A stretch of 64,000 bases of DNA, taken from contig SMSO01000032.1 in the NCBI GenBank assembly GCA_004764695.1, positions 4,248,483 to 4,312,482 of the forward strand, in the 5' to 3' direction. A program made the position numbers and the translations under genes. The notes beneath the pieces were generated by a model. It worked only from the letters and a program-made list of their open reading frames with translations. It made no database searches and was not told the DNA's origin. The number at the start of each line of letters is the position of its first letter. The stretch's first letter is position 1. Below are positions 539 to 60,620 of this stretch, one piece after another. This DNA comes from Schizochytrium sp. TIO01. Its lineage: Eukaryota > Protista > Bigyra: Labyrinthulomycetes.

Positions 539-3500
539 CTAGGCAACATCCACATACTGATCTTCATTCCGCAAGTGATCATTTATGCGCGGTTCGGGCG
601 GCCATGGTCCAGCGGCGGAAGGTTGCATGTGACCAGAGAGTAAAAGGGCAACATCGGACACAGCAGCTTTGCGAGCAGCTGGGTCGCTTGGCAATTTTTC
701 CAATCGGTCATAAACGGCTTGCTTGGTAAGATCAGGCAGCTTATTATGTTCCGAGTTTGTAAGAATAATGGTAAGAGTACGACCCGCATCAAAATTACTT
801 GCCTTGGTCTGCAGGACCACGCGAAGCAGATCAACGACCAGATTGGTCCGCACCATGTAACGTTGATCGGCCTGGCCAGCTAGAAAATGCAAAGCGGCGG
901 CCAGCAGGAATGGCTTGTACGCAGAAGCGAGAGAGACAAACCTCTCGTTTATGGACGAACTTGCGTTCTGCACCGCTTGAGTAATGAAGTTGCAGACTGC
1001 CTGAGCCTGGCGGATATTAAAACCTAGACCCTGCATACCTTGGTCGAGAACCTCTACGGCTGCGACAGTACACACTTCCCAGACGGTAACTTGTCTGCCC
1101 TGGCCTGCGCCTATAAGTGGCACGGTAGTATGCAACAGGATTTCAGGCCGGGTTTTGGCGATAAGTTCGCAAATGGCAAAGAAGTAGCGAGCGATTTCGC
1201 CATCTAAGAGCTCGTCCGAAACAGCAACATGAACAGGAGGCTCCAGGGCAGGATTTACCTTGTTCGAGGGTGTTGACGGTGCAGCCCGAATAAGGAGCTG
1301 GGTAAGTTCCCGCACCATGTAAGACATGGCACGTGTAAGTGTGATGGAATCTGGGCTGTCATCAGTATCGCTCCAGATTCTACCCGTCATGAGTTGCAAA
1401 GAAGAAAGAGGCTTTAAACATGATGGCTCAGAAGAGACTGCAAAACTAGCAACCATGTGTTCAATCATGTCCGGTACAAAGGGCGCTGCAGCAGCTCCGA
1501 AGCAGACAGCGAGTTCATCATAGAGACCTGTGAAGACAGTGATGAGACGAATGGCACTCTGACGACCATATGCTCCCGAAGAGGTATTATTAATTTGTTG
1601 TCCTAATGGGTGCGTGGATGTGAGAGGATTTGCAACCCGGTCACCTTTCTCCTGAGGCTGGGCCAAGTGGATGAGACGAGAACAAACCGCCGCAATATCT
1701 GGCCAAACAATCTGGAAAATAGGGATCATTGCACTAATAACAAGCTGACGACCTCGCTTGCCTGTCTCGCGAGTATCCAATGCACGAAGCACATGTCTAA
1801 AAGTTAGAAGAGCAGATGTGACAGCCCGGCTAAGTTCGTCAAGGTCTGCATCCTCGGGCGCAGACCTTGCTGCGCGGAGTACCTGAGCGCTAGACCCAAG
1901 CTGACGTTCAAGGCACCCACGGAGCATATTAATACGTGCTTCTGTGTCTTGAGAGTGGCGTAACAAATGCACATAACGAAACGCCAAATTTGTAATGCTC
2001 TCGCGCACCACAGCGCAAGTGAGGGGTGAGACTACAAAAGCGTGCTGAACTTCCTCTGCTTCATCAAAGTGTAACACAAGGCCTTCCACGCCAGTGAGGA
2101 CCTTGACCTGCTTCTCGTGACAAAACTTGCCATTCGCCGCGACGGGCGAAACCACAAACTGGCACGTTTGTAGTTCGGTGAGAACCCAGGGTTTGGTAGC
2201 AGCCTTCTTGCTCAGGTTGAGAAGAGCTTGAGCTGCCTCGAGACATGTATTTTCGGCAATCACCGAAACTGATGACAAGAGGAAGCCAATTGCCTGGCAC
2301 AGTGCCGAGCCCGGTCCCTGTCCGTTAATCGGACTGGGGGACCGTGTACGTGCAATTCTAGTCACTTCACCGAGCAGCTCACAAACGGCCTTACGTACAC
2401 TCGCATCGGAGGTTCTCCAGCTCCACTCCATGAGGTCTGTCAGAAGATCGATCCAAAGGGTTGCCAAAGATGCTGCCGCTGCTTTTCGTTGCGCAGTATG
2501 ATTCGTCGTAACCGAATAAGTGCGACCTCGCGAGTCCATCGTATACATTGATCCATTGACAGATTCTGCAAGGTCCTCCTCAAGGGGGCTCATCTGGCCC
2601 ATAGATCCACAGCTTTCTGAGCTCACAGTGCGAGTGGGCTTTCCACGTGCATTTGGTGATGATTGTCCAATGAGCGAGGACCCTTGCGGTCGGGAAAGGC
2701 TTCCCGTAAGGTCTCCCTGGTGGCGGAATGTAGCATCGGGCCCTGTGGTGTCCCAAGTTTTGCTCCTGTACGTGATTGGGGAGTTTTGTCCCACAGAGCT
2801 CGACCCTTCGTTGCCCTCGTTATAATTTTGAGTCTCGTCCTCATCGTCTAGACCTCCGCTTCCAGTGCCGTTTTCACCGTCGCTGGAAATATCATCTGCG
2901 TCTTCATCGTCATACTCCAGTGTATCTTCTGCTTCTGATACTGCGATGAGGCACTTTACAATTGCTTGCAAACGGAGCGAGTTGTCCATGCCCTCAGATC
3001 TGAGTTTCGAATGCAGTAACAGCAGAACGTGTCGCACAAACGTATCTCCTGCGTTTCGCGCGCGAAGTCCTTCTCCATTCATGGAGTTGTGAATTTGTTG
3101 CGCTGGATTTCCAGGTGATGCTCCCTGCATCTCCACTGGAACCTGTCGTTGCTCAAGTTCTGGCCAGCACATGCACAGGTTAATGAGCGTATCAAATATC
3201 CGGTGTCTCAACCGAAGACCTGCTGCAGATCCATCTTGAGCACGTAGACTGGCTGCTGTGCAGCTCACAAATCCTGTCACTAGCATTGAGAAGAGCTCCA
3301 GGCTACCTTCCCTTGTGAGGATTGCTGGCAGTTTAGATACAAGTGCTCCTCTAGGGTGTCTTCTCCGCCATTCAGACATGAAGCTGTAACATCCATGGAA
3401 TCCATCTCCTGCAACATCCCAGAAGTCGAGACAGGCCTCGAGGGTTGGAAGGTCAACTGGGTTCTCGACTCCATAGAGCAGGATATGAACTACGCGGATT

Positions 3501-5110
3501 CTAGAGGCTTCGCAGAAGAACAGAAGGCACCTCAGGTGTTGGGCACAAAGAGCAGCAGCTCCCATGCAGACACCACGCCACTTGAGTCGCATGGGGTCCA
3601 CTGCAAGGTCTTCATAACCTGCCTCGAGGTCATCACTGTCCGCGGGCGGTTGTGTACTTCGCCATTGCACAACGGTGTCGAAAGCATTAAGTAGTGCGTC
3701 AGCGAGCAGATCCACGCCCCATCTATAAATTTCAAGCTCATCTTCTTGAAGTGTGAGGATCGAAGGATACGATTGATCCGAGAGCGTGTCTACGAGAATT
3801 GTAATGCTGTGCTGAAAAAGAGCGCTGCTCGGTTCACAGCGGTTGATTAGGTGGGCAATCCATTCTGCGATCGCGTGTCCTGACGCGCCACGTGCCAGAA
3901 TTTGGCGCAGTCCAATACCCAAGTTTACAATTTGGTTTTCCTTGCGTGAGCTGCTTCCATTGCTGCTGTCGCTACTGTGATTCTGATTGCTGTTGCTACC
4001 GTTCCCGTTTCTATTTCTGTTGCTGTCGATAATGTTGCTGAGTCCGAGACCACTGAATTCGGTAGTGCTGGAAGAGTACGAGGGCACTTCAGAAATGATG
4101 ACGCTGGCTGTCCACGAGTTGAGACACTGAACGGCACTCTTGGCGACGTCCTCTTGAAGATTGTTTGCACTGTAGAGCACCATGGCTTTGTCAAGAAGGT
4201 CAAGTGTGAGCGACCTGAGATCGATCATGGCGGATCTTGTGGCCTGCTTCTCCTCCTCATTGAGAAACAGCCAGCAAAGTTCGAGCTCTTCAACAATGAG
4301 TCGAAGGAACTCGAAGCCGTCTCTGACGGGCGGCTTCATGAACTTTTCCACTGCGTTACGCAAGAGTTTCGGTCTTTGTAGAATGCTTCGCACACAGACT
4401 GACGCCAGGATGAGCCTGAATCTTGACTGGATTAGAGGGCTTGTGTCTCCACGCAGACCTCCTTCAATAAGATCGAACATAAGTTCGTACACCTTTTCTC
4501 TCTGGGACAAGTCTACGCGAGACCATTGTGACCTAACCTTACTCAGCAGTAGCTGTGATGCAAAGAATGCGACCTTGTCGTCATCGTCTGCGTACTTGGC
4601 AGGGCTCTGACCTCCCACCTTGAGACCCTCGCCCTGCCTCTGCCGGGTACAGGCAGGCCCACAGCTCTGTCTGTTTTCAACGCGGCTGCGATTTTCTGCG
4701 TTGCCGTTTTCGCTGGCAACATTGCCGTTGTGTCCATTTCTGCTGTTATTAACATTGGTACCGCCGTTGTTACTGTGAGTGTTGTTGTTATTACCGTCGC
4801 TGTTGACATTATCGGGATGATTCTTGCCGTCCCGGTCTGCGTCTTTACACTCGCAGCGGCATCTCTCTCCGCGAAGGCTTCCTGCAGCGGCAGAAGGACC
4901 AAGTCTTGCACCGGGCCCTGAGACGTCTCCTCCGGCCTCGCTGGCGCTAGCGCCGCCACCAAGGACCAGTCTAGACGCGAGCTCAAGGCCAACAAGAAGG
5001 CCTTCTTCCGCCTGCTCCAGCTCCAGGAGCCATGCGTTCGCAGCCTGCTGTTCGCGGGATCCCGGCGCCGCGTGGTAAAGCGCCCTCACGGCGCGTTCCA
5101 CGCCCTCCAT
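539..5110 (-). CDS. Importin-beta/karyopherin superfamily HEAT-repeat protein (importin-13/transportin-SR-like) with long low-complexity insertions
   Basis: 1523-aa uninterrupted ORF. N-terminus VERAVRALY..QQAANAWLLELE and VAFFASQLLLSKVRSQW resemble the importin N-terminal domain, and LEACLDFWD matches the FW motif of the IPO13/TNPO3 group. Leu-rich helical composition interrupted by Asn/Ser-rich and acidic inserts. Confidence 0.7.
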   Translation of the reverse strand: MEGVERAVRALYHAAPGSREQQAANAWLLELEQAEEGLLVGLELASRLVLGGGASASEAGGDVSGPGARLGPSAAAGSLRGERCRCECKDADRDGKNHPDNVNSDGNNNNTHSNNGGTNVNNSRNGHNGNVASENGNAENRSRVENRQSCGPACTRQRQGEGLKVGGQSPAKYADDDDKVAFFASQLLLSKVRSQWSRVDLSQREKVYELMFDLIEGGLRGDTSPLIQSRFRLILASVCVRSILQRPKLLRNAVEKFMKPPVRDGFEFLRLIVEELELCWLFLNEEEKQATRSAMIDLRSLTLDLLDKAMVLYSANNLQEDVAKSAVQCLNSWTASVIISEVPSYSSSTTEFSGLGLSNIIDSNRNRNGNGSNSNQNHSSDSSNGSSSRKENQIVNLGIGLRQILARGASGHAIAEWIAHLINRCEPSSALFQHSITILVDTLSDQSYPSILTLQEDELEIYRWGVDLLADALLNAFDTVVQWRSTQPPADSDDLEAGYEDLAVDPMRLKWRGVCMGAAALCAQHLRCLLFFCEASRIRVVHILLYGVENPVDLPTLEACLDFWDVAGDGFHGCYSFMSEWRRRHPRGALVSKLPAILTREGSLELFSMLVTGFVSCTAASLRAQDGSAAGLRLRHRIFDTLINLCMCWPELEQRQVPVEMQGASPGNPAQQIHNSMNGEGLRARNAGDTFVRHVLLLLHSKLRSEGMDNSLRLQAIVKCLIAVSEAEDTLEYDDEDADDISSDGENGTGSGGLDDEDETQNYNEGNEGSSSVGQNSPITYRSKTWDTTGPDATFRHQGDLTGSLSRPQGSSLIGQSSPNARGKPTRTVSSESCGSMGQMSPLEEDLAESVNGSMYTMDSRGRTYSVTTNHTAQRKAAAASLATLWIDLLTDLMEWSWRTSDASVRKAVCELLGEVTRIARTRSPSPINGQGPGSALCQAIGFLLSSVSVIAENTCLEAAQALLNLSKKAATKPWVLTELQTCQFVVSPVAANGKFCHEKQVKVLTGVEGLVLHFDEAEEVQHAFVVSPLTCAVVRESITNLAFRYVHLLRHSQDTEARINMLRGCLERQLGSSAQVLRAARSAPEDADLDELSRAVTSALLTFRHVLRALDTRETGKRGRQLVISAMIPIFQIVWPDIAAVCSRLIHLAQPQEKGDRVANPLTSTHPLGQQINNTSSGAYGRQSAIRLITVFTGLYDELAVCFGAAAAPFVPDMIEHMVASFAVSSEPSCLKPLSSLQLMTGRIWSDTDDSPDSITLTRAMSYMVRELTQLLIRAAPSTPSNKVNPALEPPVHVAVSDELLDGEIARYFFAICELIAKTRPEILLHTTVPLIGAGQGRQVTVWEVCTVAAVEVLDQGMQGLGFNIRQAQAVCNFITQAVQNASSSINERFVSLASAYKPFLLAAALHFLAGQADQRYMVRTNLVVDLLRVVLQTKASNFDAGRTLTIILTNSEHNKLPDLTKQAVYDRLEKLPSDPAARKAAVSDVALLLSGHMQPSAAGPWPPEPRINDHLRNEDQYVDVA

Positions 5111-21221: not shown

Positions 21222-22151
21222 GGTGAGTCTCGAACGCAGAACTCGTCACGAGAAAAAACAAAGAAAGACTTTGGTGGCCAGTGCACTCCTCTCATAGTTT
21301 CCTTATTTCCTGCTTTCTTCTTTCTTCTGAAGGTGACATGGTAGGTATAACAACAGTAGTAGCACTCTTATGAAACGCCCCATTTTTAATGCACGCTAGG
21401 ACTTTGTTAGCGATACCATAAAGTAGCACTACATTTCATTCAATTATCTAGCTGTGATGTCATTTGAATCGAGCAAGGAAATGAGCATTGTGGATATGCA
21501 TAGGTGTCCTAAATAGACCATGCAGCAGCTGTGCATCCGTTCAGAAAGAATAATGAAGCGTCAGACTTGTAATATTTGAAGAGTGAAGGGAGCTTACTTG
21601 AGTTTAGGAGATCCTACAAGAAATAAAATTCTGTAATTCTAGCACCTGGTGCAAACAGGATGTATTCATGTATACAAGGATTATGGTGAGAGAGGGTTTT
21701 GTTTGGGAGAAGATAATAGAAAGTTTAATTCCTTTACTTTAAAATTGGGGAAAGAGGTCGGCATATAGGCATTAAGCATGACAATAGAGCTTCGTCCATG
21801 AGGTGTTTTTTCATAGCCGCAAAAGAGTACAGAACAGCGTTGAAAAAGGCATTACAAAGGCTCCCCACACGAAAATTCACGCATAGGTGCGCTGGATCTA
21901 GAACGAGAGAAATCCAAAAGTGATATTATAATCCTACCTTTTGGTTTTACACAAAAGGAGAAGCAAAGAAGGGTGATCTGATTTACTCGAAACCAACAGT
22001 GTTGGGGGTCTCGAGGTAAGTTTGACAATAAGTCGGAGGATTTCTTACAAGGATAATCGCCACCGTCGTTGTCATCGTTGTAATGATCATCACAGTCATT
22101 GCAACTAACGACAAAATGATGTATATGTAATAATAAAGAGGTCCAAGACGT

Positions 22152-23712
22152 TTACTGTTGCTCCTTTTGTTGTTTGGAAAATGTCGTAGAAAGCGATCCA
22201 ATATCCATGAAGTGACCCATGCGGCGAGCCTTTGCCTGCACGTAATTCATACTGTAGTCAGAGTTTGGTACAACGACGCACTCCAGACGTTCTGAAATTT
22301 TGATACCAAGGTTCTCAAGGCACTCGATCTTGCGAGGGTTGTTTGTGAGCAAGCGGATGCTTTGGATACCAAGATCCTCCAGAATATCCCTAACAGAATC
22401 GTACTCACGGGCATCGTCAGGTAATCCGAGATGGCGGTTTCGCATCAACTGTATCAAGGCCTGCCTCTTGCATAGCGTAAGCTGCAATTTTGTTTGCTAA
22501 GCCAATACCACGGCCCTCTTGCGGTAAGTAGAGAACCATGCCACCCTTGGGTGCTGTTGCAGTCTTGTTGGCGAGTTCCGGGTGCGGGCACTGCTTCATG
22601 CCGTGGTCAGGCACAGCAGATTCGCCCTTAATAAAATTGAGAGCAAAATCTAGCTGTTGCTTGCAATCACATTTGAGACTTCCAAAGATTTCACTAGTCA
22701 AGCACTGATCATGGACACGCACGACAACATCACTCTGGCCCTCGACATGGCCATGGATAATTGCCAAAGGCTCAGCGCCAGTGTATTTGTTACGGTAGGC
22801 ACGCACACGGTAGCGTCCATTAGCCGTGGGGAGAGTTGTCTCTGCCACAAATGCATAGTTAGATGTGCGAGACTCATGTGCCGGATTGCTACTTCCATTG
22901 AATCGCTCGGCATAGTTTTGATGTTTATACAAGGGCACAGAGCCCTCAACGTTATCAGTGCTCTGTTCGGAGTCGGTCTCCTCGTGTGATCCTTGAGCAC
23001 GGCCGCCCGTGCTCACGCCGTTTTCAGAAGCGACTTTGCTGGTCTTGACGTCCGCCTCGTTCTCGTCACCGATAGCAGCAAAGTTACCATCCAATTGGCG
23101 CTTGTCAATGATGTAACGCGTGCCGTAGTCATTATGGAGCACTTTGACGCCCCGTGGAATAGAAGAGTAGACGGAAATCAGGGCCAGGGCATCATCCAGG
23201 CAAAGGCGCGGGTAGTCCTGCATGTGGGGGGGGATAGGGATTCCAATGACTTCTCCGTGGTACACGCGAAGGTTGTGGTTGGATTTATCAAATTCGGGAA
23301 TGATGGTGAGGATGTTCCAGAACGGCTGGCCGTTTTTGCGATAATTGAGGATCACGACACTGGTCTGGCTCGTGTCCTTCATGGCCATACGCAGCTCTTC
23401 AACGTCTTCCGGGTCTGTTTTCGCACCCTGCAGAAAGTTGCATTTGCGACCCACCATTTCGGCCTCTTCGTATCCTGTGAAGTCCAGGAAGTTTGGCGTT
23501 ACGCTGAGAACAATACCTTTGTCATCTGTGAGAATCTCATTGGAAGGCATGCTCCCTGCTGCGAAATTGCTCGCGCTCTCAGCGCGTCTGCGGATGTTTC
23601 CTTTAACGACATGCGTGCCTCGAAAGTCCATCGGAATTTCTTCCACTTCAGACGCTGAAGACGACCTCGACCGCGGTGGGGAGGCATCTGAAGAGCTCGC
23701 TGCGTCCACCAT
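22152..23712 (-). CDS. ribA: LOV-domain / GTP cyclohydrolase II (RibA) fusion protein, about 519 aa once one extra A at 22438-22440 is removed
   Basis: LOV (about 23541-23242): FLDFTGYEEAEMVGRKCNFLQG, NYRKNGQPFWN. GCHII (about 22857-22200): VRVHDQC..FGSLKCDC, QEGRGIGLANKIAAY, GLDTVDA/NRHLGLPDDAREY, IRLLTNNPRK, YVQAKARRMGH. The two track ORFs 22417-23724 and 22152-22487 join exactly at DTVDA|NRHLG. Confidence 0.92.
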
Positions 23713-25967
23713 GATGATAAGCAATCAGGTGATCCTTTGTAAAGTTACGTAAGGCTAGCAAGTTGATAGGTATGTGAGCGATGCTATACGATGCGATGCG
23801 AACGAACAACACCTCAGGGCGTCGATCCGATCGCAGCGGAACTTGGCGGATCGCTGAGCAAAGCAGGACCTGAAAAAAACCGCAGAAAACTTCCCTTGCG
23901 GGCAGTGCGTGCTGTGGGTCTTGCGTCCGCAATCCGTCCGGTCGCTGCGCCTCGAGGCGGACTGGACTGTGCGCCTCCAAGTTTCTGCGCGAGGGCTGTG
24001 CCTGCTCTGTTTCTGTTTTGGTGATAACATTAACAAAATCAAGAAAGAAAACAACATCACCTCGAGGCACCGTCACTGTAGTACATTCGTACATACGGCG
24101 CCGCCTAATAGTAGTAGACATTCCCATATTCCCATCGCTGCTTCAACTTTATCCCAGACAAAATAAACATGTCATAGCTAGCTTCAGCAAAACTACGTAG
24201 TACCTTGGTAGCGCCTGCTAGCGCCTCGCTACGCTGTGTGCTTTCTCCTCCCGCTCGACAATCAAACGCGGAGTCCTACTTTTTACTCTAGCTAGCAGCC
24301 CCTCGTTCAGGGCGATGTTCTCCCTTCGTCTCTGCTGACTCGGAAGTCATTTCCGTATTCCCGCGCAATTTCACCAACTTCGAGTAAACATTCCACTTCC
24401 CGCCGCCTTCAATTCCACTTGTGTCTCCAATTCCCACTTCGCCCTCAAGTGCCTTAAGCACTGCCCATGTCGCCCCCTTTTGTCCCACTTCTGCAGCGCT
24501 ATACTCTACTGTACTTCTCCCCCGCAAGTGCAATGTTCGCCACCACAACTCGCCTATTCTACCTATAACCTACTGCGAGAGCGCCACTGAGACACACCAT
24601 ATTTGTCCATCAGCTTTCGAGAACAAGGAACTTCACAGAGGGGCTATGGTTTAGGCTATGCTGGCGGTTATCAGTGCGCTGTGAGGCGGTAACTTTTTCT
24701 TTCGCTTTTCTTTCATGCTCCTGCCCAGACGCAGGGGCCCCTCTAGACACCTCTGATGCGTCGCGAGTCTCGTGCGCGGACATAAACATGTCACAAGCTT
24801 GCATAATCAACTTGTCAGAGCAGAGGCTCTTGCTAAACCATTTGGAGGCCATTCCTGAATCCCTTGAAGTGAATAAACTCAGGCCACCACATTGGTACCT
24901 CTGCATTCCCAATTTTCGCACAATCGTGCATGGCAGGTAGGTAGGTAGGTGCCTTAGGTAACCTAGGTACCCAAGAAGAAGAAGCCGTCGGAATCATATG
25001 GTAGGCATGAACTATTTATTGCGCAGTTGCGTCTACCTAAAAGAGTATGCTGCAGCACGTGAGTCCAAACAGATTCCCAGCCGGCTGGAAGCTAGTAGCA
25101 GGAGGAGGTGTCGATCTTCAAAGCTGAGGTGGTCGCAGACGTCTCTTTTGTGGACGTCTCTTTTCTACCTGGAGAAGGCAACTTGAATGTTCCTGAAGAC
25201 CTCGGCTTTTTGCCCGAGTCGGCACTGCTCTTCGACCAGCAGCAGAGCATCCGTAGGGGGCACTTAGCATAAACTTAGGAGTAAAAATCCAATGATTGCG
25301 CGAAATTGCGATTCATCATTCGAGTCGGAATTTTGCGAAAAGGTATCTCACATCGCCGTTCGAGCTGCGATCCTCGGCCGCCGAAGTCTGGGATCCCGAG
25401 GGACCGCCGTTGAAAAGCGGCGAGGGAAGAAAACACCAACTTGGAATGCCTGCGACCTGTTGCAACGGGAGATGCCCGGCTCGTCCCGAGATCCTCGTCC
25501 CGAGCCTTCGCTGATCTTCTCCAATTCTGCGACTGACTGAGAAAATGAGATAACGCCTATCTGTGGTAGACTTCGATGAACCTTCATTCGTCTACGTCTG
25601 CGAGGCTCGTTTCAATTTCGTGTTACCCGAATCATGTGTAATTGGGCACCGTGTACGTCACCAGCACCACCAGCAAGAGCAGTCGAGGTTTTAGGACCCA
25701 ACGCGATGTCTTGTCCTGTTCGAAATGTTTAGCCGATCATCGAGTGATTAAACTCGGGTTTCTCGACGCCGTCACTGAGGAGGCAGCAGGCTAAAGTGAA
25801 GGAGACAGCCCCAACGGCTCTGGCTGGCACGCTTGCGGCCTCCACGGTTCCAGCGTCAGAGTTTTCGAAGCTCGTTTGGGCATTTGGAGTTGAGTTTTGT
25901 ATTTGAGAGCGGATTGGGTTTTGCATTTTCGAAACTTCGAATTCAATTCGAAATTTGAATTTTAAAA

Positions 25968-47543: not shown

Positions 47544-50500
47544 TTGGCGCCCTTCGCCTTCGCTGCCTCGACATTGACATCGTCGTCGTCGCCGTTGGAG
47601 ACAGCAAAATTGACAGCAAGAGCGCCAGAATTGGACGCGAACCCCTTTGCTCCGGCAGAGGCTCGGGAAAAAGATAGCGATTTCGAAGGCGAATTTGAAG
47701 ACAGATTTGAGGCGATTCACAGAGGCCAGAGGCTGGGACAGCTCCCACAAATCTCTTCCCCCTCGTCAGCGTCATTGTCATCGGCATCTACGCAACCTCA
47801 CTCCAGATCATCATCTCCATCTATCTCTTCGGGACTTCCTCATTCATATTCACACTTGCAATCGCATCTTTCACAAAACCTCTGCGACTTGCAGCCTCAA
47901 TACTCACAACCTCAGTTCTCCTCGAGTGTAGCCTTCTCAGGAGGCAACAACGCAACAGGACCTCGCGGAAGAGGTATCACAGCCAGCCGTCAGAGTGCTT
48001 TAGAAAACCGTCACTTTAGACAAGACGGCTCTGGCTTTGGTCTTGGCTTTGGCCTCGGTTTCGGATCTAGCGGATCTTACCTTGGTGCTCAGGCAGCTCT
48101 CCCATACTCCAAGGATAACGGCTTTGAGGAGGCCAACCCTGCGCAGGACGAGCTCGCAGGTCGCCTTGGAAGGTCCTGGCGAGAGTTTGGTCTTAGTGAC
48201 AAATCCAAAAGGCACTTGCTTCAAATGACGAACGGGTCAACGCATGGTATGCTTCACAGCCAAAGGCAGCACAACCACAACAACAACAACAACGATGGTA
48301 CTGGCAACCCACAGCACCAGCGAAGAGACCATATGATGACTGAAGGCCATCATATTCGGCAACAACAACATGGCGTAAACTCGGGCTCCATCGGGCAGAG
48401 ACAACAACCACCACCTCCGCCACCACCGACGATGGCACACCCTTCGAGCTTGGAAGCCAGTCACATGACCACAATGTTAGGTCGTGACAACTACACAGGA
48501 CACCTCGATCCATCCCACAGTGCAAGCAGTAACAGCAGCAGCAGCAGTAGCAATGTCATGGTTCCTTCGCCACCGGTCACATCTGGTGTTCCAGGGTCTG
48601 CTTCTTCAACAACCTCCACATCTTCAGGAGGAAAGCGAAAAAGCAACAACAGTGCGGCTCTAGCAACTCTCAGCTCTTTAGCGAGCATTGCAGGTGATAA
48701 TGATGAATCCTCACCGACAGGGCGAAAAAAGCCTCGTCGCCAGGCTCAAACAGAGAGCAAAGGTATGTCCCTAGATCAGCACATCGTTTTCTATGATTTA
48801 ATTGCTAAAGAGCTGACCATGAACCGCCGGGCAGAGCGTGACTGGGGAAAACTTTATCACGAAGGTGGCCAGAACTTTCGCAGCTGGTGGTTTGAAGCAT
48901 TCCCTAGTGTGAGTCTCTATAAGCAAAAGGGCAAGCTGCTGTTTGGTGAGCGTCGAGGTCGTGTCCAGCTTGGGTTCTGGAAATCACTTGTTAAGCGAAA
49001 GGATATGGCACGACCTTCCGAAAGTCTTGTTGATATTGTCGCTAGCGAACTTGAGAAAAAAGCTAATGCCTTTCCAGTACCAAATGATGATAGCTCTGTC
49101 CCTCCTCACATGGCACGTTCAGAGCCTGGGATCAACCCGTGGTCTTTCAATGTTGAAGCAGCCTTCCTTACTGACCGTCTTATCCGTGGTGAGAAGGGAC
49201 CTGGATCTATTCTTGATTGGCCAGAGACACCGCGAAGGGCAGTGCTTAGCAAAATCCTCAAGCTCCACCGCAGCTACGGGGATGGCTTCGAAGGTGTCTC
49301 AAAACATTTCAACCACCTTATTGTTCAAGCTGAAGTAGAACTTGCCGTTCTCAGTATTTGCGATTGCAGGTCTTGTAAAGCATGGGAGGTTGGCGCAGCT
49401 CGTGGCCGCGCACCGGAGCTGAGACTTTTGTGGAGCCGTCGTCGTGCGGCTCTAGTTCGCTCTGTTCTTGAACTTCATAAACGCTTCCCTGATGATGAAG
49501 TCAAAGTAGCAATTCTTGCACGGCAACAGCATATTGAGTTTGAGCCTTGGCGTGACGATACTATTATTGCTCTCCTTAAGGCCTCACACAGTCACACGAC
49601 CTGCAATGTATGCTTAGCGTCAAGTGCCGCTGGCATTGCGCCGCTTCTTACATCTGTAGCTGGAACCAACATGCTTGGGCATGACATACATGCTTCTGAG
49701 CACCTAATGTCATCTTCACATGGCGAAGTGTCTCGTTTGGGTGAGGATAACCATTCTACGAATCAGTTGCAGCAGCATATGCCCATGGAAACCTCACTCC
49801 ACGCGCCAATGAGAGCCACTCCACACAACAATCACCAGCGTCATACTATGGGAGATCAGCAACAACACCAGCAATACTATCACCACCATCAGCAACACCA
49901 TTTAATGAACCAGACACACATGCACGCTGAAAACAACTCACCAAGCTACCACTCGCGGGAGCTCCAAGACACATATATTTCTCTTGTCACCCAAAATGGA
50001 GAGAACAACATCCAGATCCTTGTTTCTCAGGATCCGGCTTCTGGCGGCACTAGTGCTCTTCGTCTTCGCTACGGGTCTCGAGTAGCATTTCGATACAATC
50101 AAAAACTTGTAGAACAACAGTGGTCTGGATCTTCTATTGTGGCCAATTTTGACCCACAAGTAACTTTTCCTGAACCTGATCGAATTCTCGTGAGTATTGA
50201 TGGTGTTCCCAAAATGCACATTGTCTTTGACGGGGTGAAAACTCCCCAACTTGGAGCCAACAACGAGCACGTATCCTTTGTAGGCCTCTTTGGATACCCG
50301 CACGGTATGATGCGTGAGTTGCGCGCTGTCCTATATTCTACGATGGACGCTCAACAGGTACTCGGGGCCCAAATGGCTGAAGGACGTGCTCTTTTAGCCC
50401 GCTCTATTCCTTTGCACTTAGACCAGGGAACGCATGTACATTTGCGTTGGATATCAGTCCTTGAAGAGCAGCAGCTCGTTCCCGTGAACAGAGATGCTGC

Positions 50501-51176
50501 CCTCGTGGCAGGATCTCCAGATGCCTCTGTAGCATTATTCCCATTTTCTACACCAAATATGCCGTTGCATGGACCCAATCGTATTACCCTGCAAGTGTAC
50601 CACGGGCGCGGGCAGGACTCAGACACGTTGGAAATTGTGATCGACCCAACTATGGGCAAGCCCTTTGGATTTATCAATACAAGAATGACTCTTTTGCCTC
50701 CTCGCAACCCCCACATTGTCATTGGATGTCTCCCGGAGCACGATGTCTGGGCAAAGAGCGTCGAGTACAACCTGCGAATGGCATATGGTTATGATGTGAG
50801 CTCCCGTGGTGCAAGTCGTAATCGCCTTCTTGGTGTCTCGGAAGATATCCATAACGCTTGCATTTTTATCTGCTTAGCACCTGTTGTTGGCACTGCATCA
50901 CAGCTCTTTGGATTTCATGAGCATGAGATGAGATACATTTGCAACGCATTTGAGCAAAATTCGGCTTTGGTTATTATGCTTCATAGTCACCTTGACCTTG
51001 AGCGGGAGCTTTCCAGTCCAGAATTTAGCTTCCCTTCTCTACGCCGTGCTCCGGCATTTGCATGCCATATCGATACCATTAACAATGCCGTGTCTGAAGC
51101 TCATGCCTACATTCAACGCAGTCTTCTTAACGCACACGAGCACGGCCCGCGTCTCGAATTCTCCTCTGAAAACTAA
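47544..51176 (+). CDS. Large multidomain protein: His/Gln/Ser-rich disordered regions, unassigned globular domains and a divergent C-terminal TIR-like domain; start uncertain (first in-frame ATG at 48225)
   Basis: Frame open from 47475 to 51176. The C-terminal 140 aa show the TIR beta/alpha pattern. RKKPRR is NLS-like; CDCRSC and HTTCNVC are possible metal ligands. Confidence 0.8.
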   Translation: MAPFAFAASTLTSSSSPLETAKLTARAPELDANPFAPAEAREKDSDFEGEFEDRFEAIHRGQRLGQLPQISSPSSASLSSASTQPHSRSSSPSISSGLPHSYSHLQSHLSQNLCDLQPQYSQPQFSSSVAFSGGNNATGPRGRGITASRQSALENRHFRQDGSGFGLGFGLGFGSSGSYLGAQAALPYSKDNGFEEANPAQDELAGRLGRSWREFGLSDKSKRHLLQMTNGSTHGMLHSQRQHNHNNNNNDGTGNPQHQRRDHMMTEGHHIRQQQHGVNSGSIGQRQQPPPPPPPTMAHPSSLEASHMTTMLGRDNYTGHLDPSHSASSNSSSSSSNVMVPSPPVTSGVPGSASSTTSTSSGGKRKSNNSAALATLSSLASIAGDNDESSPTGRKKPRRQAQTESKGMSLDQHIVFYDLIAKELTMNRRAERDWGKLYHEGGQNFRSWWFEAFPSVSLYKQKGKLLFGERRGRVQLGFWKSLVKRKDMARPSESLVDIVASELEKKANAFPVPNDDSSVPPHMARSEPGINPWSFNVEAAFLTDRLIRGEKGPGSILDWPETPRRAVLSKILKLHRSYGDGFEGVSKHFNHLIVQAEVELAVLSICDCRSCKAWEVGAARGRAPELRLLWSRRRAALVRSVLELHKRFPDDEVKVAILARQQHIEFEPWRDDTIIALLKASHSHTTCNVCLASSAAGIAPLLTSVAGTNMLGHDIHASEHLMSSSHGEVSRLGEDNHSTNQLQQHMPMETSLHAPMRATPHNNHQRHTMGDQQQHQQYYHHHQQHHLMNQTHMHAENNSPSYHSRELQDTYISLVTQNGENNIQILVSQDPASGGTSALRLRYGSRVAFRYNQKLVEQQWSGSSIVANFDPQVTFPEPDRILVSIDGVPKMHIVFDGVKTPQLGANNEHVSFVGLFGYPHGMMRELRAVLYSTMDAQQVLGAQMAEGRALLARSIPLHLDQGTHVHLRWISVLEEQQLVPVNRDAALVAGSPDASVALFPFSTPNMPLHGPNRITLQVYHGRGQDSDTLEIVIDPTMGKPFGFINTRMTLLPPRNPHIVIGCLPEHDVWAKSVEYNLRMAYGYDVSSRGASRNRLLGVSEDIHNACIFICLAPVVGTASQLFGFHEHEMRYICNAFEQNSALVIMLHSHLDLERELSSPEFSFPSLRRAPAFACHIDTINNAVSEAHAYIQRSLLNAHEHGPRLEFSSEN

Positions 51177-55391: not shown

Positions 55392-55729
55392 TAATGAAAC
55401 GTGGTTATGATTACTTAGAGGTATTTGGGGAAATGTCTTAGGTGGTAGTAATTAGTTATTACTATGGCTAGGATTGTCTTGTAGAATGTGCTTGATAAAT
55501 TCAAGTGCTTCTGGTCGCTTTGGTATTTCGGGTCTGCCTGCAGGTTTTGCTTTTGCAGACTCCTCTTGATGCTTGCTTGATTCCCTTCATTCCCTGGTTG
55601 ATTCCAGCGCAGTGTTGTACATCACCCATCATGCCATCGTGACACTTTTGTCCTGCTCTCGTCAGATAGGGGCTCCTCTTAATCTTGCGAAGTCATGTCG
55701 CAGAGATGTGTCTGAATTCCTTCTCAGTA
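55392..55729 (-). repeat. 3-prime LTR (338 bp)
   Basis: Matches 60653-60989 apart from one A indel and one T/G substitution by my reading. Confidence 0.96.
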
Positions 55730-58700
55730 CTCCCCCCAAGTCCGCCGGTTGAGCTTTCATGAGTGTGTCGCTATGTCTCCAATGTGGCTCAATAGGTAAG
55801 GACTTTGTCAAACAGTCTGAAGGGTTAAGTTGGCCGGGAATGTGATATACTTTGATCTTGCCTTCTTCTTGTAGTACTGATAAACTGAGATATTTGAGAG
55901 CCAAGTGTTTATTACGGTCGTTCCAGTGACCTCTGTTTAATACATCAACGAGTGACTGAGAGTCCGTGTAAATATGTATGACTCCTGTATTCACACCGAG
56001 TTCGTGTAAGAAATTTTTGACTCCTATTGCAGCTCGTGTGGCTTCATGAATACTCATCATTTCGGCTTCCAGGGTACTTAAGGCAATCATTGATTGGCGG
56101 GTGGATTTCCACAGTACTGTACTGTCGTTAATTCTAATCACATAACCAGAAACAGATTTAAGGTGAGGATCTTCAACTGCAGCATAACTCGCGTCTGCGA
56201 ATACGTTAATTTGTAAGTCTTGTTCGGAAGTATGTCCTCGTAATGTTAATCCATACTCCTGGGTTCCTTTAATGTAACGCATTATTCGTTTTAGGGCATG
56301 CATGTGAATGTCACCATTCTTATGTCCGTGTCTGCTGACTTGATGAAGTGCGAATGCTAAGTCGATCCTAGTCTGTCCTAAGTAAAGTAATTTTCCGAGA
56401 ATCGATCTGTAGTCCCTGTGTTGTTCCTCTATTGGATGGTCCGGTAAACTACACCCCTTTTCTAATGGTGTTTTAGTAAAGTTTGCGTTGGACATTCCAC
56501 TAGTCTCGAGTATCTTTGCAGCGAATTTTTCTTGCGAGATTGTGCACACTTTGTCTTGTCTGTTGTACTTGAATTTGAGTCCCAGGTAATACACTTCTTC
56601 TGGATTGTGTTGTACTTTTACCTCGTACTTGTTCATAAGTGCTTGAACAGTGTTGCGAACCGCATTTGTCGTTCCAAATATGAAAAGATCATCAACATGA
56701 GTAATGATAATGGAATTTTCGTTCATGTAGCAACTGGGATCAAATTTGCTTTTCCTGAGTCCACTGTCACAGAGTGTCTTTGACAAATGCTGGGACCAAC
56801 GTCTTGGGCTTGTTCGGAGGCCATAAAGTGAGCGAGCTAACTTATAAACATGTCCATCCGGGACTGTTACACCTTCAGGTGGTTCTACAAAGATATTCTC
56901 GTTGTCGTGGTCGATTTCAGCTTGAAGAAAGGCTGCGGACACGTCTAGTACTGCTGTTGCCCAATTTCGAGTTAGAGCAACTACAAGAGCAGTTCGAAGT
57001 GTTAGGCGATCTGAAGTTGGTGCATAGACGTCGACTTTCGATTCGAGTGGTTCGTCAAAGCCTTGCACAACTAGTCGTGCTTTTGCGATGTCTTCGATTT
57101 CTTTGTAGGTAAATACCCATCTGGCTCCCATGGTACCTGTGGTGGCAGTAGATCTTGGGACAAGTAAGAAAGTGCCGCTTCGTTCAAGGTTTGACCATTC
57201 TTTCCGAATAGCTTCTATCCAAGGTTCTTGATCTTCAGGCTTCATCCTTGTAAATTCTTTGTATGTCTTTGGAACTGTGATATTTGGAGTCAGTCGCATA
57301 ATGGAATTATGTGCTGTTTGCATGACATTGCTGTTGTTGGTTTTCTGCTTTACGGAATTTGTTAGATTCTCCCCCTGACGTGAAGCATGAAAGGCTCCGT
57401 CAGAACGTGGACGTTTGGTTCCGTGTTGAGTATGTGTCATGGAAACACGCTCCCCCATTCCTGAGAAGTCAGGTTGGGACTGCTCCCCCATTCCGGTTAC
57501 GGGTATATTTAGTGCACTGTATGTGTGTCTATTTGCTGCACCAAATGCAGTTTCAGCGTCAATGTTAATTCGTGTAACTGGAATTCGTGTACGATTGCTA
57601 CGTCTGATACCCGTGGTGATGATAGGTTCCTGTGAGGGTTTATAATCATCATCGTTATCATCAGCATCGTTTTCATCTCCTGCATTATGGGAGGGTGCTC
57701 TGAGTAGTGTATTTTGATCATTTGTACTTCTATGTGGTTCATAGGCATCTGCTTCGACTCTAGCAAAGTCAGGGTTCTCATAATCATCTGATACAAAGTC
57801 AGGGTTCTCATAATCATCTGATCCGGGGTTAGCGAAGTCAGGTTTCTCAGAATCGTCTGCTCCGGGGTTAGCGAAGTCAGGTTTCTCATTCATTAACATG
57901 ACCGCACTCGTCGCCCGTCTGGATAAAAGAGGGGAACTCAAAATCGGTTCATTTAGAGTGGGTGATAAAATATTAAGTGGAGACTGTGAGGTCATTCCAT
58001 CTTTGTCGGGCGGTAAAGCCTGAGCAGTGTGTTCAAGCGGTGAAGCTGTCACAGTACTGTTAGAGGATGTGTTTATAGTCGGGCGGTTAGTCCCCAAGGG
58101 TGTTACAGATGAAGGAGTAAGGTTAGTAGAGTTTGATACGTCAACCCAGTTATTGGTATCGGATGTATCATGTGGAGTGCGCGATAATGCAGGTGAGGTT
58201 AGTGGTCCAGAATTCAATGGATCTTCAAAGCAGTTGAGTACGCGATTCGTAATGAAGTCGTCATAGAAAACGACATCTCGGCTAACAACAAAACGTTTCG
58301 TATCTCGAGTTAGGATGAGATGTGTATCATAATTGTACTCCCGTGCAGGGCCTAGGTACAGGCCGCGTAGACCTCTAGGTGTAAGTTTGTTTGGAGGACT
58401 CTGATTCTTGAAGACCACGTCACTCCCAAAGATATGTAAATGATCAAGGGATGGCGGTTTGCCATAGTGACGTTCGTATGGTGAGATTCGATGGCGTTGA
58501 GTGCATAAACGATTCCGGAGATAGGCTGCGTGCTGATACGCGAGCCACCAGAATTTATCTGGAAGTTGTGCCGTACGGAGTAAGACTCGAGTAAGTCGTA
58601 GGAAAGTGCCATTTATTGATTCCGCTGGGTGTAGAGCGTGAGCTCCACTGGGACTAATGCTAAGTGTCCAATCCCATTCGTCACAGAGACGTCGGAATTC

Positions 58701-60620
58701 TCCATGAAGGAAATATTTGGCTCCGTCTACGTACAGGCGAGCTGGACGTTTCTCATAGCCATGCCAGTCGGCACGCCATCGTTTGAGAGCAATTGAAACT
58801 TCGCTCGGAGTAGTCATTCCGTATGGTTGAGCAATGTCTGAGGCTAAGTCTCGTGCTATCAGAACATATCGAATGTTCTTGGGTAAGCCATCGACAGGCA
58901 TTGGTCCTACTACATCAAGTGTCGCGGCTTGTTGTGGTTTGTAGGAACGTTCTTCATGTGGTCCCTGTGGGACAGGTCGCGTCTTGATGTTGCATTGAGG
59001 ACATCGAAATTTGATTTTGGAGACCGGGACGCCTAATGTATGTGACATCCGGATGGGATTAGGATGGCCCAGACGTAGATGCAATGTTAGCCAGTCCTTG
59101 TTATTGACTTGGGTAGTGGTTACTGCCAGAGCTTGTTGTTTGGTACTGAATGTTAGTGTTGGAGATCCATGATATGAACCCAACTGTATTTGTTCTGTAC
59201 TAGGGGTATCCATAATAAGTTGTCGTAAATGGATATCATAGCCTTGTACAAGAAGGTCACTTGTAGAGATGAGAGTAGATTTCATTGCTGGACAGTAGTC
59301 TGCCATGAGGCGTATCTGTGTAACTTTCCCGTCAGTGGTTGGAACCTCAAAGAGTGCAACTCCACCTTGAGTAACGGTAAGGTGTGTGCCGCCTGCCACT
59401 TCTATGCGTCTCTTATCAGGGAGATTGTAGAATTCTATGAATACATCTCGATTGGCGGTAATCGTTCTTGTGCATCCCGTATCTAAGATAGCCATGTTGG
59501 AGGGTATCGAAGGTCCCACATGGAATCCGTAACCATCGACATAAGTATCAAAGCTGTTGTTGTTCGTGGTCGAGTTGGTTGAGTTTGTAGGGATATGAAT
59601 GTTCTGCATGGTTACAGCTGGATCTGCACCTCGGTTGTTTGGCGGGGACGAAGGTCGTCGAGCCTTATGTGGGTGTTGTCGCTGCGGTTGATTCGCACGT
59701 GAGTGTGTATACTGCTGGCGCGGATGTGCACTTGGATAGGTTCTGCATTCGTCACCATAGTGCCCCTTTTTGCCACACCTTTTGCAGACAATGGTGCTCC
59801 GGTACGAACGTTTCCGATTGTACCGACCTTTGTTCTGTTGGTCAGGTGGACCTTGCGCCATCATAGCTGATTGTTGGACTGGTTCTCGAGCTGTTTTCGA
59901 GTATAGATGGTCATTTTCGTGAGGGTTTACATTGCCAAGTTCCTCTGCATCCATGTGGAGACTCTTTCTATTACCCGCCAGGATTGTCCTGAGTTCGGAA
60001 CTAGATGCGAATGACCCTATGCTGCTTAGTGTCGTAAGTAGCATTAATGAAGCAATTTCTTTTGCCACATTGTTTGGGTCCACATAAGTGAGTAGTTCTT
60101 CCACTATCGATTCTGCCTTAGCATAAAGGACTTTGAACTCTGATTTTCCTCGTCGTTGTCTCGCGATGAGTTCTTTTCTTGAGTTTAAGGCTGAGAATGC
60201 TTTTATCAAAGCTATGGCTCCTCCATTGTTTTTCGATAAGAAATGCGCTTCCAGGTTCTCCCATGCCTTGAGGCCTGACATGGTTTCTGTATTGTTCTTG
60301 TTCATGACGAAAAGTAAGTCTCCTTGTGAGCTTACTATTCCTACTAGAAAGGCATATAGTTTTGTATCCATAGCTAGTTTAGTCATTGGATCAGTACACG
60401 CTCGTATACTTGCTGGATTTAGGTTCCTTATATTCATATTAGTAAGTAATTCAATACGAGTTGTTCTCCACGTATCTATCCCACCAATCTTTATTTGGGG
60501 TAGACTCCATCTCGAGTGGTCGAAGATGGCATCACCTACGATCCTCCTATTTTCTCGGTTGGCACTGGCCGTCGCGTCTGTATGAGACGAGGAGGTTGCG
60601 TTTTCTTCGTGTTGAGACAT
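55662..60620 (-). CDS. Copia Gag-Pol polyprotein (1652 aa, uninterrupted)
   Basis: Zinc knuckle CKRCGKKGHYGDEC; protease ILDTGCT; integrase HLRLGH..CPQC, LDVVGP, VDGAKYF, AESINGT; RT KARLVVQGF, LYGLRTSPRRW, HVDDL; RNase H FADASYA, EAE, DSQS, NPSDCLTK. The stop codon lies 68 nt inside the 3-prime LTR. Confidence 0.97.
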   Translation of the reverse strand: MSQHEENATSSSHTDATASANRENRRIVGDAIFDHSRWSLPQIKIGGIDTWRTTRIELLTNMNIRNLNPASIRACTDPMTKLAMDTKLYAFLVGIVSSQGDLLFVMNKNNTETMSGLKAWENLEAHFLSKNNGGAIALIKAFSALNSRKELIARQRRGKSEFKVLYAKAESIVEELLTYVDPNNVAKEIASLMLLTTLSSIGSFASSSELRTILAGNRKSLHMDAEELGNVNPHENDHLYSKTAREPVQQSAMMAQGPPDQQNKGRYNRKRSYRSTIVCKRCGKKGHYGDECRTYPSAHPRQQYTHSRANQPQRQHPHKARRPSSPPNNRGADPAVTMQNIHIPTNSTNSTTNNNSFDTYVDGYGFHVGPSIPSNMAILDTGCTRTITANRDVFIEFYNLPDKRRIEVAGGTHLTVTQGGVALFEVPTTDGKVTQIRLMADYCPAMKSTLISTSDLLVQGYDIHLRQLIMDTPSTEQIQLGSYHGSPTLTFSTKQQALAVTTTQVNNKDWLTLHLRLGHPNPIRMSHTLGVPVSKIKFRCPQCNIKTRPVPQGPHEERSYKPQQAATLDVVGPMPVDGLPKNIRYVLIARDLASDIAQPYGMTTPSEVSIALKRWRADWHGYEKRPARLYVDGAKYFLHGEFRRLCDEWDWTLSISPSGAHALHPAESINGTFLRLTRVLLRTAQLPDKFWWLAYQHAAYLRNRLCTQRHRISPYERHYGKPPSLDHLHIFGSDVVFKNQSPPNKLTPRGLRGLYLGPAREYNYDTHLILTRDTKRFVVSRDVVFYDDFITNRVLNCFEDPLNSGPLTSPALSRTPHDTSDTNNWVDVSNSTNLTPSSVTPLGTNRPTINTSSNSTVTASPLEHTAQALPPDKDGMTSQSPLNILSPTLNEPILSSPLLSRRATSAVMLMNEKPDFANPGADDSEKPDFANPGSDDYENPDFVSDDYENPDFARVEADAYEPHRSTNDQNTLLRAPSHNAGDENDADDNDDDYKPSQEPIITTGIRRSNRTRIPVTRINIDAETAFGAANRHTYSALNIPVTGMGEQSQPDFSGMGERVSMTHTQHGTKRPRSDGAFHASRQGENLTNSVKQKTNNSNVMQTAHNSIMRLTPNITVPKTYKEFTRMKPEDQEPWIEAIRKEWSNLERSGTFLLVPRSTATTGTMGARWVFTYKEIEDIAKARLVVQGFDEPLESKVDVYAPTSDRLTLRTALVVALTRNWATAVLDVSAAFLQAEIDHDNENIFVEPPEGVTVPDGHVYKLARSLYGLRTSPRRWSQHLSKTLCDSGLRKSKFDPSCYMNENSIIITHVDDLFIFGTTNAVRNTVQALMNKYEVKVQHNPEEVYYLGLKFKYNRQDKVCTISQEKFAAKILETSGMSNANFTKTPLEKGCSLPDHPIEEQHRDYRSILGKLLYLGQTRIDLAFALHQVSRHGHKNGDIHMHALKRIMRYIKGTQEYGLTLRGHTSEQDLQINVFADASYAAVEDPHLKSVSGYVIRINDSTVLWKSTRQSMIALSTLEAEMMSIHEATRAAIGVKNFLHELGVNTGVIHIYTDSQSLVDVLNRGHWNDRNKHLALKYLSLSVLQEEGKIKVYHIPGQLNPSDCLTKSLPIEPHWRHSDTLMKAQPADLGGVLRRNSDTSLRHDFARLRGAPI
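55730..55737 (-). other. Polypurine tract GGGGGGAG
   Basis: Immediately precedes the 3-prime LTR on the element strand. Confidence 0.85.
57763..57888 (-). repeat. In-frame minisatellite (39- and 30-bp units) in the integrase-RT spacer encoding four E[KN]PDF repeats
   Basis: EKPDFANPGADDS EKPDFANPGSDDY ENPDFVSDDY ENPDFA. Confidence 0.9.

Follow-up and report, generated by a model that had tools for sequence, protein, structure and literature searches.

The minus strand of a 64,000-nucleotide window from the thraustochytrid Schizochytrium sp. TIO01 (the whole stretch analysed; assembly GCA_004764695.1, contig SMSO01000032.1, positions 4,248,483 to 4,312,482) carries a gene for a 519-amino-acid (aa) protein in which an N-terminal LOV domain is joined to a C-terminal GTP cyclohydrolase II (GCHII). 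The features of the gene are as follows, with positions counted from the first letter of the window; UTR, untranslated region; CDS, coding sequence; AF2, AlphaFold2; pLDDT, predicted local distance difference test.

21756..23999, minus strand: extent of the mRNA from transcript-like contigs (5' UTR of ~287 nt, CDS, 3' UTR of ~400 nt, no intron)
22152..23712, minus strand: CDS of the 519-aa LOV-GCHII protein (ATG at 23712, stop at 22154-22152), with one spurious extra base inside
23560..23601, minus strand: N-terminal flanking helix, A'alpha-like (aa 38-51; AF2), with the basic motif KGxIR(R/K)RAxSASNF
23236..23541, minus strand: LOV core (aa 58-159), from Pfam, matches to solved LOV domains, AF2 and Foldseek
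23437..23442, minus strand: Cys91 (codon 23442-23440), the photoactive Cys predicted from sequence, then Asn92, in the motif GRKCNFLQG
23248..23250, minus strand: Val155 in strand I-beta, at the site of the signalling Gln (AsLOV2 Q513)
23161..23211, minus strand: conserved helix after the LOV core, PRLCLDDALALISVYSS (aa 168-184), J-alpha-like and a candidate signal relay
22930..23160, minus strand: variable disordered linker (aa 185-261; AF2 pLDDT <50), with allelic differences
22897..22929, minus strand: clade-specific linker motif LYKHQNYAERF (aa 262-272) shortly before GCHII, with a short AF2 helix at 267-272
22155..22857, minus strand: GCHII domain (aa 286-519), from Pfam, NCBIfam, AF2/Foldseek and alignment to 2bz0
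22663..22704, minus strand: Zn-binding cysteines C337, C348 and C350 (HDQC...KCDC), from alignment to 2bz0
22543..22623, minus strand: GCHII loop insert of ~24-27 aa relative to E. coli RibA (aa 364-390), seen as an alignment gap, with C375Y at 22589
22438..22440, minus strand: assembly artefact, AAA where AA is correct, giving an apparent frameshift (four of four runs)
22407..22409, minus strand: codon of catalytic Arg435 (DAREY), equivalent to E. coli R128, from alignment to 2bz0

The residue numbers of AsLOV2 and E. coli RibA used here are those in standard use for these proteins.

In the window as assembled, the open reading frame (ORF) that begins at the ATG at 23712 reaches a stop after 431 codons, and another frame, open from about 22442, ends with the stop at 22154-22152. 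Contigs from four public runs, belonging to four studies and including one run whose sample is possibly the source of the assembly, were mapped to 21700-24300, and in all four there is one base fewer at 22438 or 22441. The transcriptome protein P0001 of MMETSP0958 is 519 aa long, is labelled 'type:complete' and reads without interruption across the frameshift site into the second piece; it is identical to the first ORF piece of the window except for one residue, C375Y. Orthologues of the gene have an unbroken reading frame as well. Because all four runs have one base fewer and the MMETSP transcript encodes an uninterrupted 519 aa, the frameshift at 22438-22440 stems from an error in the assembly and the gene is intact; with the extra base missing from every run and the transcript ORF complete, a pseudogene is ruled out. 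MMETSP0958 is presumably Aurantiochytrium limacinum ATCC MYA-1381, and a literature search for MMETSP0958 found no paper; the header gives TAXON_ID 87120, which is that of the fungus Rhizopogon burlinghamii, probably through a transposed digit, since A. limacinum is 87102. Another single-base indel relative to the independent read assemblies lies at 24035. From the two indels the assembly seems to carry further homopolymer-length errors, and any other frameshift seen in the assembled sequence is best compared with reads before a pseudogene is called.

The gene is intronless and is transcribed as one mRNA for one polypeptide. A single 2243-nt contig of run X14 (RNA-like) spans 21756-23999 and includes both domains with no joints; this contig and the complete MMETSP ORF bear out the single polypeptide proposed in an earlier, sequence-only reading of the window. 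Contigs of run X2 (transcript-like) end at 23993 and 21706, and DNA contigs extend beyond both ends. No upstream ATG was found in the 287-nt 5' UTR, and no RNA element in the window matched Rfam, which indicates that there is no FMN (flavin mononucleotide) riboswitch. The X2 contigs are broken at 22945-23061 by an allelic bubble of two alternative 117-nt contigs with four single-nucleotide polymorphisms (SNPs; 22975, 22999, 23024, and 23031), which look like two alleles in the disordered linker. Strain and allele differences within the CDS number seven, four synonymous and three non-synonymous; the latter are confined to the disordered linker (A228S and E230G, accompanied there by two synonymous SNPs) and the loop insert (C375Y).

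The two domains and the segment between them

The N-terminal domain is a LOV domain by fold, sequence similarity, adduct-forming Cys, and flavin-contact residues; flavin binding and a photocycle are putative. A Pfam match to PAS_9 covers aa 61-148 (E 3e-14), solved LOV domains are hit at E 1e-19, and in NCBIfam the models for LOV histidine kinases and YtvA hit the N-terminal part of the protein and those for RibA the C-terminal part. An AF2 model built on a 47-sequence alignment (mean pLDDT 75; predicted TM-score, pTM, 0.51) gives, in order, a helix at 38-51, the LOV core at 58-159 (pLDDT >90), a helix at 172-184, disorder at 193-268, a helix at 267-272, and GCHII at 286-518. In Foldseek comparisons the model reaches TM 0.85-0.92 to LOV structures and TM 0.90 to E. 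coli RibA (2bz0). The sequence features listed in the earlier reading are all present in the protein, at the positions given there, from the Cys91 codon at 23442-23440 and the two Pfam domains (PAS_9 at E 3e-14, GTP_cyclohydro2 at 185 bits) to the predicted helix after the LOV domain and the disordered linker, which correspond to AF2 helix 172-184 and disorder 193-268.

Across the 47 LOV-GCHII proteins, which come from distant eukaryotes, C91, F93, L94, Q95, N123, and N133 are invariant; the adduct-forming Cys is thus kept in every sequence, and Q95, N123, and N133 correspond to the flavin-contact residues Q454, N482, and N492 of AsLOV2. The pocket departs from the canonical GRNCRFLQG...GxQ at three positions, with K90 for Asn, N92 for Arg, and V155 for Gln, and changes of this type are common to the whole labyrinthulomycete-type clade. 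For the two arginines that hold the FMN phosphate in AsLOV2 (R451 and R467), the protein has R108 and an Asn at position 92; Arg occurs at position 92 in 5/47 family members, and R108 is kept in 37/47. The site of the I-beta Gln, which in canonical members of the same family is the Q of a Y(V/I)G(I/V)Q motif, is occupied by V155 here, by Gln in 12 of the 47, and by Ile, Val, or Leu in 34. LOV receptors that lack the active-site Gln still signal, so that the Gln is dispensable, and about 350 natural Gln-less LOV domains have been counted, mostly with Leu or Ile (PMC9098866). With neither the phosphate-binding Arg nor the signalling Gln in the pocket, the chromophore or its affinity may differ from that of a standard FMN-binding LOV domain; the chromophore may be riboflavin or a flavin held only weakly, in which case the domain would also respond to flavin supply. 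The titles of PDB entries 7qf2, 7qf3, and 7qf4 describe riboflavin bound by a LOV-derived protein and, within that series, a mutant of a phosphate Arg; a literature search for the miniSOG riboflavin and R57Q structures found no paper.

The C-terminal domain is a complete RibA-type GCHII with its catalytic residues intact, and conversion of GTP to DARPP is the predicted activity. In the window frames GTP_cyclohydro2 (PF00925) is found in two pieces that adjoin at profile position 113, and in the intact P0001 one match of 185 bits spans profile positions 4-164 of 165. P0001 passes the RibA model NF001591 (206 bits; cut-off 148) and just misses TIGR00505, by 8 bits (197.5 bits; cut-off 205.85), because of the loop insert in GCHII, part of which (aa 369-379) has low pLDDT. 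In a HMMER alignment to 2bz0, C337, C348, and C350 correspond to C54, C65, and C67, Y412 to Y105, and R435 to R128, which agrees with the assignment of the Zn cysteines, catalytic Tyr, and catalytic Arg in the earlier reading; the Zn triad, Tyr, and Arg are invariant in the 47-sequence alignment. Pfam finds no DHBP synthase domain (PF00926) in the protein, which is therefore not a bifunctional RibBA.

The segments that flank the LOV core include three conserved motifs. The KGxIR(R/K)RAxSASNF motif of the N-terminal helix is common to P0001, P0002, and P0003 (including the Hondaea protein); it resembles a basophilic kinase site and could provide a second regulatory input. Directly after the LOV core, the motif P(R/K)LC(L/V)DDALAL(I/M) is conserved in the labyrinthulomycete-type clade and predicted to be helical, and a variant form is found in relatives with the order DHBP synthase (DHBPS)-LOV-GCHII. 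In a search with the LOV part, whose ranking is dominated by multi-LOV proteins, this post-LOV helix is covered only by LOV-GCHII members and one 1006-aa protein. Roughly 20 aa ahead of GCHII, the motif (L/F)(Y/Q)(K/R)HxNY is found in labyrinthulomycete-type LOV-GCHII proteins only and is missing from plain GCHIIs. The post-LOV helix and the HxNY motif would be the best candidates for a relay between sensor and enzyme.

Place in the genome and distribution of the fusion

The genome searched comprises 64 Mb in 37 contigs, with the window at C31:4248483-4312482. PF00925 matches the LOV-GCHII gene and one 461-aa ORF on contig C6 (locus L002, G000:C6:1545603-1549037; ORF 1357-2742, minus strand) and nothing else. 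The C6 ORF is a full-length match to NF005536/PRK07198 (667 bits) and has its own Zn motif, HDECNGSDVFGSDICTC. We take the NF005536/PRK07198 family to be URC1-like, and the C6 ORF is on that assumption probably URC1-like and not a RibA. The genome has no match to URC4 (DUF1688), but the control genomes are without a match too, so that this absence does not bear on the assignment. The remaining riboflavin genes are each present in single copy elsewhere: DHBP synthase, without a LOV domain, on C35, lumazine synthase on C24, and riboflavin synthase on C32. There are eight PAS_9 matches in the genome, of which only the one in LOV-GCHII has the C-x-FLQ and NY...FWN motifs, and the LOV domain used as a genome query matches itself only. 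By these searches LOV-GCHII appears to be the organism's one RibA-type gene and also its one LOV gene. With the rest of the pathway encoded elsewhere, all de novo flavin synthesis should start at this protein. RibB, which the earlier reading noted as absent from the polypeptide, is encoded by the separate DHBP synthase gene on C35, and the second, plain RibA for which that reading proposed a search is not found in this genome, where the C6 ORF of PRK07198 type is the only other PF00925 match.

Two genes of the photolyase/cryptochrome family (PF03441) lie at G000:C30:8509130-8509738 and G000:C31:2174699-2175304 and are other candidate blue-light sensors of this heterotroph. Elsewhere in the window there are long ORFs at 55662-60620 (minus strand, 1652 aa), 47544-51176 (plus strand, 1210 aa), and 539-5110 (minus strand, 1523 aa).

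The nearest named relative is Hondaea fermentalgiana (70% identity); Mucochytrium quahogii and Aplanochytrium are also close, and all three are labyrinthulomycetes. LOV and GCHII are both present in most of the first 78 proteins among the matches listed; the holders are labyrinthulomycetes, glaucophytes (Cyanophora, Cyanoptyche, Glaucocystis, and Gloeochaete), chlorarachniophytes (Amorphochlora, Lotharella, and Gymnochlora), and many metagenome proteins. In eight proteins (P0028, P0030, P0033-P0035, P0039, P0041, and P0042) the order is DHBPS-LOV-GCHII, with the LOV domain between the two halves of a RibBA-like enzyme.

In a GCHII-domain tree, seven of the eight DHBPS-LOV-GCHII proteins form one clade (SH-aLRT, the Shimodaira-Hasegawa-like approximate likelihood ratio test, 97), with P0041 apart on a long branch; the backbone is unresolved and too weak for counting fusion events. 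The 'plain' rows within fused clades of this tree are mostly short fragments; for one of them, the 272-aa Aplanochytrium fragment P0061, the complete 417-aa cluster mate has a LOV domain. In the LOV tree, all seven DHBPS-LOV-GCHII proteins included form one clade (SH-aLRT 90), the labyrinthulomycete-type and DHBPS-bearing LOV domains group together (SH-aLRT 99), and this group joins the LOV-GCHII proteins that sit with chlorarachniophytes in the GCHII tree (SH-aLRT 91). The glaucophyte LOV domains are placed apart from the other fused LOV domains. A single origin of all fused LOV domains was rejected by the approximately unbiased (AU) test (p 0.0008; 109 columns, quick tree). This rejection suggests at least two fusions or a domain replacement, with an apparently separate origin of the glaucophyte LOV domains; since these do not group with the others, the pairing seems to have arisen more than once, which in turn suggests that it is useful.

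The family thus has dozens of members in public data, and the novelty attributed to the protein in the sequence-only reading was overstated. That reading also held that the pairing is listed in LOV surveys for some algae, and in this it was right: entries for glaucophytes in UniProt carry the name 'Putative LOV domain-containing protein / GTP cyclohydrolase II', and a paper of October 2026 reports DHBPS-LOV-GCHII in Thraustochytrida and speculates on light-regulated riboflavin synthesis with feedback (PMC13737086). A single paragraph of that paper is all that was found in the literature on this architecture. Neither the architecture nor the idea of light regulation is new, then, and the pairing is already catalogued. 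Other points of the earlier interpretation hold: a single polypeptide, without RibB, from a non-photosynthetic organism (a thraustochytrid nearest to Hondaea), with an architecture that recurs in many labyrinthulomycetes, glaucophytes, and chlorarachniophytes and is listed in surveys; the sensing loop that it proposed is reasonable but putative. What is new here is that the gene is apparently the only RibA and the only LOV gene in the genome, that the LOV clade of labyrinthulomycetes lacks the FMN-phosphate Arg and signalling Gln, that two linker motifs are clade-specific, and that the glaucophyte LOV domains apparently had a separate origin.

Proposed light gating of flavin synthesis and alternative functions

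The most likely function of the protein is GCHII activity gated by blue light, a reading that we favor with moderate confidence and in which light could turn the enzyme either on or off. The LOV domain would bind a flavin, and blue light would drive formation of an adduct between Cys91 and the flavin C4a. The resulting change would be relayed by the helices on either side (aa 38-51 and 168-184), perhaps with a part for the HxNY linker motif, and would alter how the dimeric GCHII domain works or assembles. Flavin synthesis would thereby be matched to light, which destroys flavins and makes free flavins phototoxic. The main argument for light gating is the invariant Cys (47/47): selection for flavin binding alone is not expected to keep this residue, which favors light sensing over sensing of flavin occupancy only. 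Also in its favor are the intact ORF and single mRNA, the confirmed folds and catalytic residues of GCHII, the confinement of residue-changing differences to the linker and loop insert, the apparent lack of a second RibA-type or LOV gene, the signalling of Gln-less LOV receptors, the conserved post-LOV helix, and the suggested repeated origin of the pairing.

Several observations weigh against light gating. The linker of ~80-100 aa is variable and disordered in the AF2 model, and well-coupled LOV enzymes have rigid helical linkers, so that coupling may be weak or indirect. The pocket holds seven of the nine residues of the LOV filter in PMC9098866 and would be missed by that filter, which has a threshold of 8/9; with N92 in place of the phosphate-binding Arg, flavin affinity may be low. 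A LOV-bearing aureochrome of a heterotrophic stramenopile, when expressed, did not bind FMN (PMC13737086), and sequence resemblance is therefore no proof of function. The PRK07198-type paralogue on C6 could be an alternative source of GCHII activity. In run X2, contig depth is ~5-fold higher over the GCHII half than over the LOV half; the depth of contigs is an unreliable gauge, and the imbalance could reflect 3' bias or a shorter transcript. Literature searches for LOV-GCHII function found no biochemical or genetic study.

Sensing of flavin occupancy is the main rival to light gating, or else its complement. As a complement, the labyrinthulomycete LOV domain, remodelled by loss of the phosphate Arg and the Gln and accompanied by clade-specific helix and HxNY motifs, may hold riboflavin loosely, and one protein may integrate end-product supply (through occupancy) with blue light (through the Cys adduct); this dual-input reading is a tentative one, and we regard it as improbable. 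If it is true, the chromophore of the sensor is the pathway's own product, which makes a self-referential loop, located where alone flavin synthesis can begin and in a heterotroph's single LOV photoreceptor. Without any role for light, the LOV domain would be an end-product sensor whose occupancy reads the free riboflavin pool, with holo- and apo-LOV differing in how they inhibit or stabilize GCHII. Replacement of the phosphate-binding Arg after the Cys in 42/47 family members, the riboflavin held by a LOV-derived protein in the PDB titles cited above, and the feedback idea raised in PMC13737086 are consistent with such a sensor; nonetheless it is unlikely, because a sensor of ligand alone would not need the adduct Cys that 47/47 sequences retain, glaucophytes have the same fusion yet retain the canonical GRNCRFLQG with its Arg, and the second phosphate Arg, R108, is still present in most of the family (37/47).

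A light-active LOV domain might instead signal by oligomerization, localization, or contact with other partners, with GCHII as a constitutively active scaffold. The long, disordered linker and the lack of confident inter-domain packing (pTM 0.51) would suit this arrangement, as would the presence of only one LOV-signature domain in the genome, since any LOV-based light signalling must then come from the LOV-GCHII protein. The pairing of LOV with GCHII in very distant lineages, probably by more than one fusion, points to a functional link with this particular enzyme, and the linker motifs that adjoin GCHII are conserved; a scaffold role is accordingly quite unlikely. A broken gene, or LOV and GCHII as two separate products, would fit the stop after aa 431 in the window and the unequal X2 depth over the two halves but is very improbable, given that the extra base is missing in 4/4 runs (including the possible source sample), the transcript ORF of 519 aa is complete, the orthologues are uninterrupted, and a single 2243-nt contig includes both domains.

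If the LOV domain gates GCHII, the protein would be a photoreceptor that acts directly on a vitamin-biosynthetic enzyme, and not on signalling, in a non-photosynthetic organism; this would explain how the cell balances loss of flavin against flavin phototoxicity in the light. A natural light-switchable RibA would also be a small optogenetic tool for controlling the supply of flavin. Genetic modification of A. limacinum is feasible, as in a crtIBY knockout (PMC10016063), and work on its light responses has so far considered cryptochromes only (PMC12913893). With a sole RibA-type gene, a sole LOV domain, and a modifiable A. limacinum, a clean genetic test is possible.

Comparison with known systems

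The closest systems are the catalogued LOV-GCHII and DHBPS-LOV-GCHII proteins, such as that of Cyanophora paradoxa (A0A126X3A2) and the Hondaea 'RibBA', which have the same order of LOV and then GCHII and share with the present protein an invariant Cys, FLQ motif, pair of Asn residues, and Zn triad. The protein differs from the DHBPS-LOV-GCHII group in that the DHBP synthase domain is missing and encoded by a separate gene. The glaucophyte LOV-GCHII proteins have the canonical GRNCRFLQG, whereas the motif here is of the GRKCNFLQG / GEV type, without the canonical Arg and Gln; they too lack the I-beta Gln, with Leu or Ser in its place.

RibBA of plants and bacteria (M. tuberculosis RibA2, PDB 4i14) has a homologous GCHII domain (E 1e-41) that is likewise fused to an N-terminal partner, but the partner here is LOV and not DHBPS, and the NCBIfam RibBA models score only 210 bits on the protein against a cut-off of 569. 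The natural Gln-less LOV domains have a hydrophobic Val, Ile, or Leu in place of Gln and keep the Cys, as here (PMC9098866); the present protein differs from them in lacking two more of the filter residues, with K in place of N and N in place of R.

Phototropin kinases, LOV histidine kinases, and LOV diguanylate cyclases share with the LOV-GCHII protein an N-terminal LOV domain with flanking helices and an adduct-forming Cys, joined to a catalytic effector. In these characterized LOV enzymes the effectors are signalling enzymes and the linker is a continuous coiled coil; in the LOV-GCHII protein the linker is ~80-100 aa of predicted disorder, and the effector makes the sensor's own cofactor.

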